Assembly: GCA_002269645.1 (NCBI GenBank)
Contig: NIVC01002735.1
Location: forward strand, 1 to 64,000
Length of the DNA: 64,000 nucleotides
Reading direction: 5' to 3'
From: Macrostomum lignano
Taxonomy: Eukaryota
In this document: one piece after another, positions 4,101 through 29,315 of the stretch
Numbering within the stretch: position 1 is the first letter of the stretch
How the letters are laid out: every line of letters starts with the position of its first letter
Translations under genes and position numbers: made by a program
The notes under the pieces: model-generated
The model's input: the letters and a program-made list of their open reading frames with translations, nothing else
Told to the model about the DNA's origin: nothing
Database searches by the model: none

Positions 4101-7100
4101 TTCGTAACCGCTCCGGTGCAGGTCCTGGCTATAGATAGTAGATAGCGAGAAAGAGCGAGCGAAGCGAGCTCTTTCGAGCTTGCTTGCCGCAGCCAATCAA
4201 GCTGAAAGCACGCACACAAGATCACCGGAAACGATTAAGGCAGCTGGTTCTATAGAAGCTGGTTCTATAAAGCTGGATCTATAGATAGATAGATAGATAG
4301 ATAGATAGATAGATAGATAGATAGATAGATAGATAGATAGATAGATAGATAGATAGATAGATAGATAGATAGATAGATAGATAGATAGATAGATAGATAG
4401 ATAGATAGATAGATAGATAGATAGATAGATAGATAGATAGATAGATAGATAGATAGATAGATAGATAGATAGATAGATAGATAGATAGATAGATAGATAG
4501 ATAGATAGATAGATAGATAGATAGATAGATAGATAGATAGATAGATAGATAGATAGATAGATAGATAGATAGATAGATAGATAGATAGATAGATAGATAG
4601 ATAGATAGATAGATAGATAGATAGATAGATAGATAGATAGATAGATAGATAGATAGATAGATAGATAGATAGATAGATAGATAGATAGATAGATAGATAG
4701 ATAGATAGATAGATAGATAGATAGATGGACACTGCCACTCCATCAGCTCAGTGCAGCAAACCGGTCCCCACCAGTCCCTGTCTGCCACTAAAGCGCGCCT
4801 ACCCTGGAGTCAGCGGCTGTCAACAGCGGAGCTGCCGCGGCGCCCGCGACCAGCGTGGCGGAGCGCGCGTTGACGGAGGCTCCGCCACCTCCGCCTGCGC
4901 CTGCGCCTGCACCGGCGCCAAACAAGCCGTTTCGTGTGTCCATGGCGTCAATGTCTGCCTGAAAGTTTTGGGACTGAGCGCCGCTGCCTGATGGGCTGTC
5001 TGGGCCTTCGTTTTCTCTTGTGTGTTTTTCTGTCATTTCCTGTTTCCTTTTCAGAAAATCTTTGTCGATTATTATTAATGTTTTTCTTAAGTCTTCGATG
5101 TGCCTTAAGCCTTAAGTCTTAAGTTTTCATTTCGTTGTCGCTTTTTTATGACCTCACTGATAAATAATTTTCATGAAGATCATAAGTGTTTTTTATGTTG
5201 TTGTTGAATTTTTCGCATTGCTTAGTAAACAGTTATATTAATTATCATATTGCATATTAGGAAATGTTATCAAGGTTAATCTGTTTGCTGATTGAGGTCC
5301 CGCTCCAGGTAAATTTTATGAATTAAAGTAATTTATTTATTTCTGCAATATGACAAATTCGAAGCGATTTCGTTAGTGGGTTAGATTTTGCAGCATGTGA
5401 CTTGAAATGTACACTACTTGCGTAGTTGATCATGTCGATTAGCCAGAGCAAATCTAATTATTTAAAGCATTTCTCAATCCACCGAATCGTTGCAGGCACG
5501 AATGTTAATAAATCAAAGTTGATAATTAATAAGAAACCATCCATAACTCCTCTCTATGCTCGTAACCCCCATACACGCCATACCCTCCTTAATCGCCATA
5601 CCCGCCATACCCTCCATGCCTGCCATACCCTCCATACTTAATATGCCTGATATCCTGCATACCTTCTATAACCTCCCATATCCTGCACTCCTCCGTACCC
5701 TCCACATACTCAACACAACTCAAGCTCAATTCCAATCCAAGCCATGTTTTAGCGTGGCAAAGAGTCAGTTAATAAAAATTATGCAGAATTATCAGAACTC
5801 TGCACAGGTGCTCGGGGGAAATTTACCTTCGCCGATAGCTCAGTGTTGGTGGCCGCATTAATAGCCGGAGTAGGCGGTTGCTAGCATTCAATGGAGCCAG
5901 ATTTTTTTTCATTTAGGTTTATTTTTAGTTTCGCAGCTACTTATAATAGCCAAATATGCGTATGACTCGATTAAGTGCTACCGCTGCAGCGGCACTTACC
6001 GAGCTTAATGTGGCCTTCATAAGGCTGAGATTCATTTCATTTGACAGGGCCTCGGCCTCGGCCTAGAGCAGAGAATGCCAGGCACCATTTTAAACAAAAC
6101 TTTGTTTAGATAATTATGGTTATACAAGCTCGTAAATCATATTTTCAAAGTTGATTCGGAACAAGAGCTTAATGAATGATCAAAGAATGCTTGCTTGTTT
6201 TCTGAAACAAATGACACTGAAGTCTAGTAAAACTCAGTTTTTTATTTCGGGATTTTTGGGAAGCCTAATGACTGTAAGATAATGATTGAGAGTTTTAAGC
6301 GGAAGTTTGTGTATGGGGAAGTTTGTGGATGGGGAAGTTTGTGGATGGGGAAGTTTGTGTATGGGCAAGTTTGTGTAATGGGGAAGTTTGTGGATGGGGA
6401 AGTTTGTGTATGGGAATATTTGTGTATGGGGAATTTTGTGGATGGGGAAGTTTGTGTAATGGGGAAGTTTGTGGATGGGGAAGTTTGTGGATGGGGAAGT
6501 TTGTGTATGGGGAAGTTTGTGGATGGGGAAGTTTGTGGATGGGGAAGTTTGTGGATGTTTGGGGGATGTTTAACAAAGGGGATGCGGAGTTCTGAGCTTG
6601 GAAAAGTTCGGGGTTGGGTCGCGACCTCCCCCCACCGACTCACCACCGCGTAGCCGCCGCCGGCCGCCCCCTTGGCGCAGCACAGGCAGTAGCCGGGCTT
6701 GCAGTGGCAGAAGGCCCACAGCAGGGAGGACAGCAGCAGCAGCAGGGCCAGCAGCAGACCGGCGATCCACGCCGACACAACGCCGAGGCCGCCGGCGCCG
6801 ACGCCCGCCGCTGCCAGGCCGCCCGCGCCAGCCGCTCCGCCGCCGCCACCGCCGGCGCCCCCAGCTAGAACGATGGCGCCAGCGCCCACAGCGTTCACCA
6901 CGCCGTCGCTGCCTGGAAAAAGAAGGCCGGAGTCCACGCCGCCGCCGCCTCCGCCTCCGACGCCAACATCGGCGTAGCCTCCGTTAGGCGGCAGCCGCAG
7001 GCCCGGCCGGAAGGGGGACACGATGTCGCCGTCCGGCCGCGGCAGGGCGGTGGGGAACTTGATCAGCTGGACGTCGGACGGGTGCAGCTGGCAGCCGATG

Positions 7101-29315: not shown

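Follow-up and report, generated by a model that had tools for sequence, protein, structure and literature searches.

We analysed a window of 64,000 nucleotides from the flatworm Macrostomum lignano (contig NIVC01002735.1, positions 1 to 64,000), which carries on its minus strand a gene for a giant neurexin-like receptor. Our data identify this locus, with a high degree of confidence, as a M. lignano gene of the PHRED-1 family, a neurexin-derived, spiralian-restricted paralogue of alpha-neurexin. PHRED-1 was described in the planarian Schmidtea mediterranea as a 2536-amino-acid protein with a signal sequence, six Laminin G domains, nine EGF domains, a transmembrane region and intracellular WD40 repeats that go with a strongly conserved C-terminus, and was termed a 'divergent neurexin-1 homolog' (Adler and Sanchez Alvarado 2017, 10.1101/131789). 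The same work found its domain combination in 14 homologues, all from lophotrochozoans, such as Schistosoma, Lottia, Octopus and Capitella (10.1101/131789). The window gene agrees with that description in every feature that is testable inside the window, since it likewise encodes a flatworm protein of about 2400-2500 amino acids or more with a signal peptide, six Laminin G domains, multiple EGFs (eight here, nine in PHRED-1) and a single transmembrane segment. It differs in having three N-terminal LamG_3/ConA-like domains, which are not mentioned for PHRED-1, and a cassette exon in its LNS4-like domain; moreover, M. lignano has a second copy (P0093, 2525 amino acids), about 40% identical.

The exon model was built independently, by enumerating in-phase GT..AG pairs between open stretches with a high GC content at third codon positions (GC3). 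The exonic open stretches have a GC3 of 0.7-0.87, compared with AT-richer introns full of minisatellites. The resulting minus-strand model has 16 exons, with all introns GT..AG, and gives 7176 nucleotides that are in frame and stop-free, encoding 2392 amino acids from an ATG at 29315. The product comprises a signal peptide, three LamG_3/ConA-like domains, six LNS domains, eight EGF-like modules, two proline-rich linkers, a glycine/alanine-rich stalk and a transmembrane helix. After the LamG_3 triplet, the order of the ectodomain is LNSa, LNSb, an atypical EGF, LNSc, LNSd, six EGFs, LNSe, an EGF and LNSf. From the start codon onwards, the exons (E1 to E16) are as follows:

29237 to 29315, minus strand: exon 1, with the start codon and the signal peptide; the transcript-derived protein P0021 has a matching N-terminus and a matching E1/E2 junction.
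26654 to 27307, minus strand: exon 2, first LamG_3/ConA-like domain (amino acids 27-244), with a weak Pfam Laminin_G_3 match; junctions backed by P0021.
23263 to 24499, minus strand: exon 3, second and third LamG_3/ConA-like domains (amino acids 245-656); Pfam Laminin_G_3, E=4e-13.
22850 to 22994, minus strand: exon 4, N-terminal part of LNSa (LNS2-like); junctions backed by P0021.
22148 to 22770, minus strand: exon 5, remainder of LNSa, first proline-rich linker and start of LNSb; Pfam Laminin_G_2; junctions backed by P0021.
20953 to 21363, minus strand: exon 6, LNSb (LNS3-like); Pfam Laminin_G_2, with N3 as the top neurexin class.
20086 to 20414, minus strand: exon 7, atypical EGF-like module at the EGF2 position; the read-through version is backed by P0021.
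19140 to 19399, minus strand: exon 8, N-terminal half of LNSc (LNS4-like); 28.5 bits to neurexin-1alpha LNS4 in a phmmer search of the PDB.
16147 to 16279, minus strand: exon 9, middle of LNSc; junctions agree with P0001 and P0023.
15509 to 15659, minus strand: exon 10, C-terminal part of LNSc; junctions agree with P0001 and P0023.
14984 to 15274, minus strand: exon 11, second proline-rich linker and start of LNSd; the junction to 14828 agrees with P0023.
13252 to 14828, minus strand: exon 12, LNSd (LNS5-like), six EGF modules and most of LNSe (LNS6-like); Pfam Laminin_G and EGF.
11529 to 11609, minus strand: exon 13, C-terminal strands of LNSe; the peptide is present in P0002.
9658 to 9885, minus strand: exon 14, end of LNSe and last EGF; junction agrees with P0002.
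8366 to 8836, minus strand: exon 15, LNSf (LNS6-like, membrane-proximal); Pfam Laminin_G_2, E=3e-10.
6644 to 7149, minus strand: exon 16, end of LNSf, glycine/alanine-rich stalk, transmembrane helix and juxtamembrane stretch, closing at the donor GTG|GTGAGT.

Twelve of the 15 splice junctions have independent support, which comes from P0021 and from the M. lignano proteins P0001, P0002 and P0023. P0021 is a 1305-amino-acid protein encoded on a 4082-nucleotide Logan contig (L001, run SRR28338165), a transcript of a related species that is 73-78% identical. It starts with a methionine and a signal peptide, in agreement with the start at 29315 that a sequence-only reading of this DNA had proposed, and continues unbroken from there to halfway into LNSc, covering all three ConA-like domains, LNSa, LNSb and the atypical EGF and reproducing exactly the junctions from E1/E2 to E7/E8. 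Because P0021 joins the N-terminal exons to the LNS core, exons 1-3 are not a separate gene, a worry that the same reading had raised. The junctions from E8/E9 to E11/E12 (P0001, P0023) and E13/E14 (P0002) are backed by the M. lignano proteins, which are identical to the window except where they are frame-shifted or mis-spliced. When the C-terminal 446 amino acids were used in a word-indexed search, P0002 was the sole match, with no transcript covering the tail. More generally, the public M. lignano proteins for the locus (P0001, P0002, P0022, P0023, P0024/P0093) are fragments, contain frame shifts or have junk sequence fused at the N-terminus.

Two alternative splicing choices were discarded. 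The acceptor used by P0001 at 14732 would delete LNS strands, and 14828 was chosen instead, with which P0023 later agreed. Similarly, an internal intron in exon 7, suspected from a GC3 drop at its 3' end, was dropped because P0021 and the trematode homologues retain the long C5-C6 loop. One additional small exon is uncertain:

11830 to 11865, minus strand: possible micro-exon of 36 nucleotides between exons 12 and 13, where P0002 has 'SLDNYKSN'.

An in-frame option exists for this micro-exon, its skipping is equally in frame, and its phases are not exactly those of the P0002 prediction.

The domain string proposed from the sequence proved correct, as the rebuilt model, Pfam, the internal ConA similarity, the cysteine patterns and hydrophobicity all agree, and the four peptides that had been said to echo neurexin are all present in the model. 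On the model, Pfam finds two Laminin_G_3 stretches, six Laminin_G domains in three pairs and, in the large exon, EGF, EGF_2 and teneurin-type EGF modules. The third N-terminal domain is missed by Pfam; it is nonetheless of the same kind, because the ConA domains resemble one another (z=10.9 for the first and second, z=6.2 for the second and third). An AlphaFold2 prediction of exon 3 from a two-sequence alignment is of low confidence (pLDDT 39.6) and contains two beta-rich blocks, whose top fold matches are tandem LG pairs (laminin LG4-5, neurexin pairs) at a TM-score of about 0.2, which is weak support. Jelly-roll binding domains of bacterial neurotoxins, lower in the same list, were set aside as sharing a generic fold only. 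By cysteine pattern, six consecutive EGFs follow LNSd (amino acids 1591-1838), and the proline-rich linkers lie at amino acids 843-862 and 1359-1378. The transmembrane helix (amino acids 2345-2370) contains the most hydrophobic 19-mer of the model, the signal peptide being second. The EGF of exon 7 contains additional cysteines and a C5-C6 loop of 20 residues, and Pfam makes no EGF call there; to judge from its presence in the trematode homologues too, this long loop of the EGF2-position module is a trait of the family.

Membership of the family rests first on an exhaustive HMMER search of 1.84e9 representative proteins, with an exact 1200-amino-acid substring of P0021 as the query. Just 72 proteins were retrieved at E<=1e-3. 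The best matches beyond Macrostomum are from Owenia fusiformis (P0025, 3736 amino acids), Dicrocoelium (P0026, 2542 amino acids) and Trichobilharzia (P0027/P0094, 2654 amino acids), followed lower down by Ylistrum balloti (P0078, 2626 amino acids) and Seison nebaliae (P0067, 4756 amino acids). These closest relatives, from trematodes, an annelid, a scallop and a seisonid, are about 2500-4800 amino acids long, and all of them are unnamed, hypothetical or uncharacterized in the databases. In the long relatives, 6-10 Laminin_G domains, accompanied or not by Laminin_G_3, are combined with EGFs, a glycine/alanine-rich cytoplasmic stretch and, after it, a C-terminal WD40 beta-propeller (Pfam E about 1e-19 to 1e-20). 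From LNSa to LNSf, the model aligns co-linearly with Trichobilharzia P0094 (residues 685-1813 and 1583-2171, with 213 and 195 bits), and the six-LNS layout is identical in that species. In addition, a transmembrane/juxtamembrane motif, WA..CKPG.C, is common to the window protein, P0025, P0026, P0078 and P0094, and is not found in neurexins. A further protein, P0028 from Plakobranchus ocellatus (GFN82964.1, 761 amino acids), bears the source name 'neurexin-2-alpha' and matches the LamG_3 region, not an LNS; the name is probably wrong, and the entry probably a fragment of a member of the PHRED-1 family.

The sequence-only reading had given 6644 as the lower bound of its feature. This position is instead a phase-0 consensus splice donor (GTG|GTGAGT), 20 codons past the transmembrane helix, with no stop codon and with GC3 falling beyond it. 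The gene therefore appears to continue beyond 6644 to the left edge of the window, its cytoplasmic part lies outside 6644-29315, and a WD40 region, the hallmark of the family, would thereby have been missed. Three tentative exons could continue the gene towards the left edge of the window:

4803 to 4958, minus strand: tentative cytoplasmic exon reading ADIDAM...GAGAGAGAGGGGG...DSR, a glycine/alanine-rich linker with phase-0 acceptor and donor.
737 to 1042, minus strand: tentative cytoplasmic exon ending ...RPNYHMEA|gt, with phase-0 acceptor and donor and high GC3, joining in frame to the exon at 50.
1 to 50, minus strand: edge-cut exon reading VDCALITQNSNMLSLA..., starting exactly at the acceptor CACAG|.

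A chain entirely in phase 0 is possible, from 6644 to 4958-4803, then to 1042-737 and finally to 50-1. The first of these exons may resemble the Owenia tail through low-complexity sequence, and the end of the second, ...RPNYHMEA, is comparable to the trematode ...QNVYNMEGMK. Among all six frames of the window, exon 50-1 gives the top 16-mer match to the 'VDCVVITKNSKYVVTG' segment of the family (score 37, next 32), which leads into the WD40 propeller, and a hidden Markov model puts this exon at profile positions 75-94. Two other open frames, at 3049-2912 and at 1104-826, were also weighed as candidates for the tail and dropped, as nothing supported them.

Several points weigh against our identification of the locus, or against its cytoplasmic part. 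The likeness to Schmidtea PHRED-1 (dd_Smed_v6_4789_0_1, GenBank AY967703) is drawn from the published description of that protein, as opposed to a direct sequence comparison, and M. lignano holds at least one paralogue with 40% identity (P0093), so that either copy could be the functional orthologue. A scan with a WD40-tail profile found no WD40 exon within the window, including the 6.6 kb downstream of the transmembrane exon, and the transmembrane motif was the sole match when the tails of five homologues were compared with the window by tblastn. The putative tail exons between 6644 and 50 are placed by splice phases and low-complexity similarity. Moreover, the match of exon 50-1 is short, with a nominal BLOSUM-derived E of about 1 over the whole window, and it is persuasive only because it is combined with strand, position, acceptor and phase.

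An alternative would be a PHRED-1-derived paralogue that has lost its WD40 tail and serves in adhesion, its cytoplasmic region being short or of low complexity. The missing WD40 exon downstream would then be expected, the open frame does run past 6644 into repeat sequence, and M. lignano has more than one copy. However, 6644 has a perfect GTGAGT donor after which GC3 drops, and exon 50-1 resembles the segment that precedes the propeller, follows directly on an acceptor and keeps the phase of an upstream open reading frame (ORF). Furthermore, the homologues have a linker of 150-600 amino acids ahead of the propeller, which would put the propeller beyond the window. We thus regard a tail-less paralogue as quite unlikely. 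The gene is most likely cut by the window edge, its WD40 propeller lying past the left edge.

The second question is how a PHRED-1-family gene relates to the neurexins themselves. Alpha-neurexin has the order LNS1-EGF-LNS2-LNS3-EGF-LNS4-LNS5-EGF-LNS6-TM, where TM is the transmembrane segment. Residues 668-1622 of the model align with residues 274-1065 of a Haliotis neurexin (LNS2 to EGF3) in one high-scoring segment pair of 118 bits, and in a search of solved structures neurexin-1alpha was by far the top match for every part of the LNS core. To place the single domains, 82 LNS domains were extracted with an iterated profile and classed by mean pairwise scores and a neighbour-joining tree with 100 bootstrap replicates, with the following nearest neurexin classes:

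LNSa: LNS2, bootstrap 36-43% (weak).
LNSb: LNS3, bootstrap 39-43%, or 55-60% when mixed LNS3+LNS5 clades are counted.
LNSc: LNS4, bootstrap 84-89%.
LNSd: LNS5 or LNS3/5, weak.
LNSe: LNS6, bootstrap 75%.
LNSf: LNS6, bootstrap 35% in M. lignano and 75% in Trichobilharzia.

A neurexin-derived core corresponding to LNS2-6, as had been proposed from the sequence, is thus supported by the co-linear alignment, by the structures and by the placements of LNSb, LNSc, LNSe and LNSf, while the equation of LNSa with LNS2 and of LNSd with LNS5 is weak only. The extra EGF-LNS unit noted before the membrane is indeed present. Since the last EGF plus LNSf is the strongest LNS6 match (36 bits to neurexin EGF3-LNS6, with LNSf matched by every beta-neurexin structure), this unit is better read as a duplicated EGF-LNS6. 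The proposal that LNS1-EGF1 was replaced by the jelly-roll domains fared worse. The Owenia and Seison members begin with an LNS1-like domain (followed by EGF1 in Owenia) and only then carry a LamG_3 array, which in Owenia has six LamG_3 stretches. Because these members keep the LNS1-like domain, it is more likely, judging from their domain order, that Macrostomum lost LNS1-EGF1 rather than swapped it.

Compared with classical alpha-neurexins (NRXN1-3, Drosophila Nrx-1, C. elegans NRX-1), the window ectodomain is therefore co-linear with LNS2-LNS3-EGF2-LNS4-LNS5-EGF3-LNS6, but it has no LNS1-EGF1 and carries the LamG_3 triplet at its N-terminus instead, its EGF3 is expanded to six modules and its EGF-LNS6 unit is duplicated. 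In place of the (LNS-EGF-LNS)x3 of alpha-neurexin, the order is LNS, LNS-EGF-LNS, LNS-EGFx6-LNS, EGF-LNS. The transmembrane/juxtamembrane sequence is also different, and what is known of the family's function concerns muscle rather than the synapse.

The co-linear alignment, the best structural match to neurexin-1alpha and the grouping of LNSc with LNS4 and of LNSe and LNSf with LNS6 would all be expected as well if the flatworm gene were simply orthologous to classical alpha-neurexin, its product being a presynaptic organiser with ligands of the neuroligin type and merely some added N-terminal domains. We consider this very improbable. In the HMMER search, the first annotated neurexins (Haliotis, Pollicipes, Magallana) come in at E about 1e-9 (3.7e-10), beneath seven non-neurexin proteins and far below the WD40-bearing relatives, which score from 1e-42 to 1e-23. 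Spiralians also own separate canonical neurexins, with a short tail ending in ...KEWYV, and in Owenia one such protein (P0038) exists beside P0025. The CKPG-containing motif of the window protein is foreign to neurexins, and no ORF downstream on the minus strand in the window has a PDZ-binding ending of the form [EK][EW]YV-stop, as in the EYYV or EWYV of neurexin. Finally, at the column of the Ca2+-ligand aspartate, a residue of the LNS2/4/6 ligand sites that is retained in 28/28 neurexin LNS2-6 domains, LNSa-LNSf (22994-8366) have A, C, I, R, R and Q. In the trematode homologues this aspartate is retained only in LNSb (and also in LNSd in Trichobilharzia). With the aspartate missing in six of six LNS domains, Ca2+-dependent binding of the canonical kind, as with neuroligin or dystroglycan, is unlikely. 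The window receptor is thus probably not synaptic, as the sequence-only reading had suggested it might be: the six LNS domains are without this neurexin aspartate, and the sole functional data for the family come from muscle.

Other large receptors also intersperse Laminin G domains and EGFs in their ectodomains, such as CASPR/Neurexin IV, axotactin, BAM-2 and Crumbs/EYS. Over the whole model, Pfam found neither the N-terminal discoidin (F5/8 type C) and fibrinogen-like domains of CASPR/Neurexin IV nor a Kunitz domain. In a comparison set that comprised neither BAM-2 nor axotactin, the LamG domain of CRB1 was never the nearest relative of any model domain.

That the gene belongs to an undescribed, lineage-specific receptor family, as first proposed, might seem attractive given the few database relatives and their lack of names, but it is highly unlikely, as PHRED-1, with the same set of domains and 14 homologues in lophotrochozoans, was already described and named in 2017 (10.1101/131789), and the members reported here extend over at least four phyla.

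The PHRED-1-family gene of the window has a further feature in its LNS4-like domain, a cassette exon located in the 2.9-kb intron between E8 and E9:

18343 to 18381, minus strand: cassette exon of 39 nucleotides, phase 0/0, encoding two cysteines, with the acceptor TTCCAG| and the donor GAG|GTAACA; an optional insert in a loop of LNSc.

In the transcript L001 the cassette is joined straight to E8, and the changes inside it are mostly synonymous. The similarity to L001 stops 5 nucleotides past the conserved GAG|GTAAC donor, and L001 then runs into the intron. The LNSc loop with the cassette is aligned by phmmer to the SS3 insert of neurexin-1alpha, although imprecisely (within about 5 residues). 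That insert, DCIRINCNSS, is present in structure 3R05 and absent from 3QCW, and it has two cysteines, like the cassette insert. It is tempting to speculate that the cassette is homologous to SS3, in which case this splicing site would be older than the split between neurexin and PHRED-1 and would still regulate ligand binding in both. On the basis of one loop alignment, we consider this doubtful, and we offer the SS3 homology as a lead and not as a result.

Regarding the surrounding sequence, a long minisatellite array is found in most of the larger introns. With several of their frames open, these arrays create many spurious long ORFs on both strands (examples are 11900-13050, 18650-19120, 8880-9600, 7170-7390, 6250-6640, 21410-22050, 28660-29080 and 90-700). 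Upstream of the gene, long GC-rich ORFs on the minus strand at 38446-42119 include an aspartic-protease motif, LLDTGA, which suggests a retrotransposon-type element. Minus-strand ORFs at 43027-44402 resemble an F-box/leucine-rich-repeat protein, probably a neighbouring gene, and more GC3-rich ORFs are found at 46788-47330 and 50863-51381.

What, then, could this protein do? In the planarian, PHRED-1 is expressed in muscle and is needed for normal muscle-fibre thickness and patterning in regeneration (10.1101/131789). The product of the window gene is a giant type I membrane protein, which would act as an adhesion or scaffold receptor with a long rigid LNS/EGF ectodomain. Its LNS/EGF array, together with the lectin-like LamG_3 array, would engage ligands in the matrix or on neighbouring cells without Ca2+, whereas the cytoplasmic WD40 propeller would scaffold intracellular partners. 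By analogy with the RNA interference phenotype of planarian PHRED-1, the receptor would link the contacts of muscle cells to how myofibres, and the organs scaffolded by muscle, are organised.

Our analysis corrects the attractive reading of this locus as a new synaptic receptor family, since the gene belongs to PHRED-1, a family that has been functionally studied in one species only. It also yields a near-complete, transcript-supported M. lignano gene model where the public entries are fragmentary or frame-shifted, as well as a domain-by-domain map of the PHRED-1 ectodomain on neurexin LNS2-6. It further shows that the Ca2+ site is lost in all six LNS domains, that family members differ in the number of LamG_3 copies in their N-terminal array, and that a cassette exon is conserved. 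Finally, as M. lignano is a transgenic flatworm model, the function of PHRED-1 is testable there.

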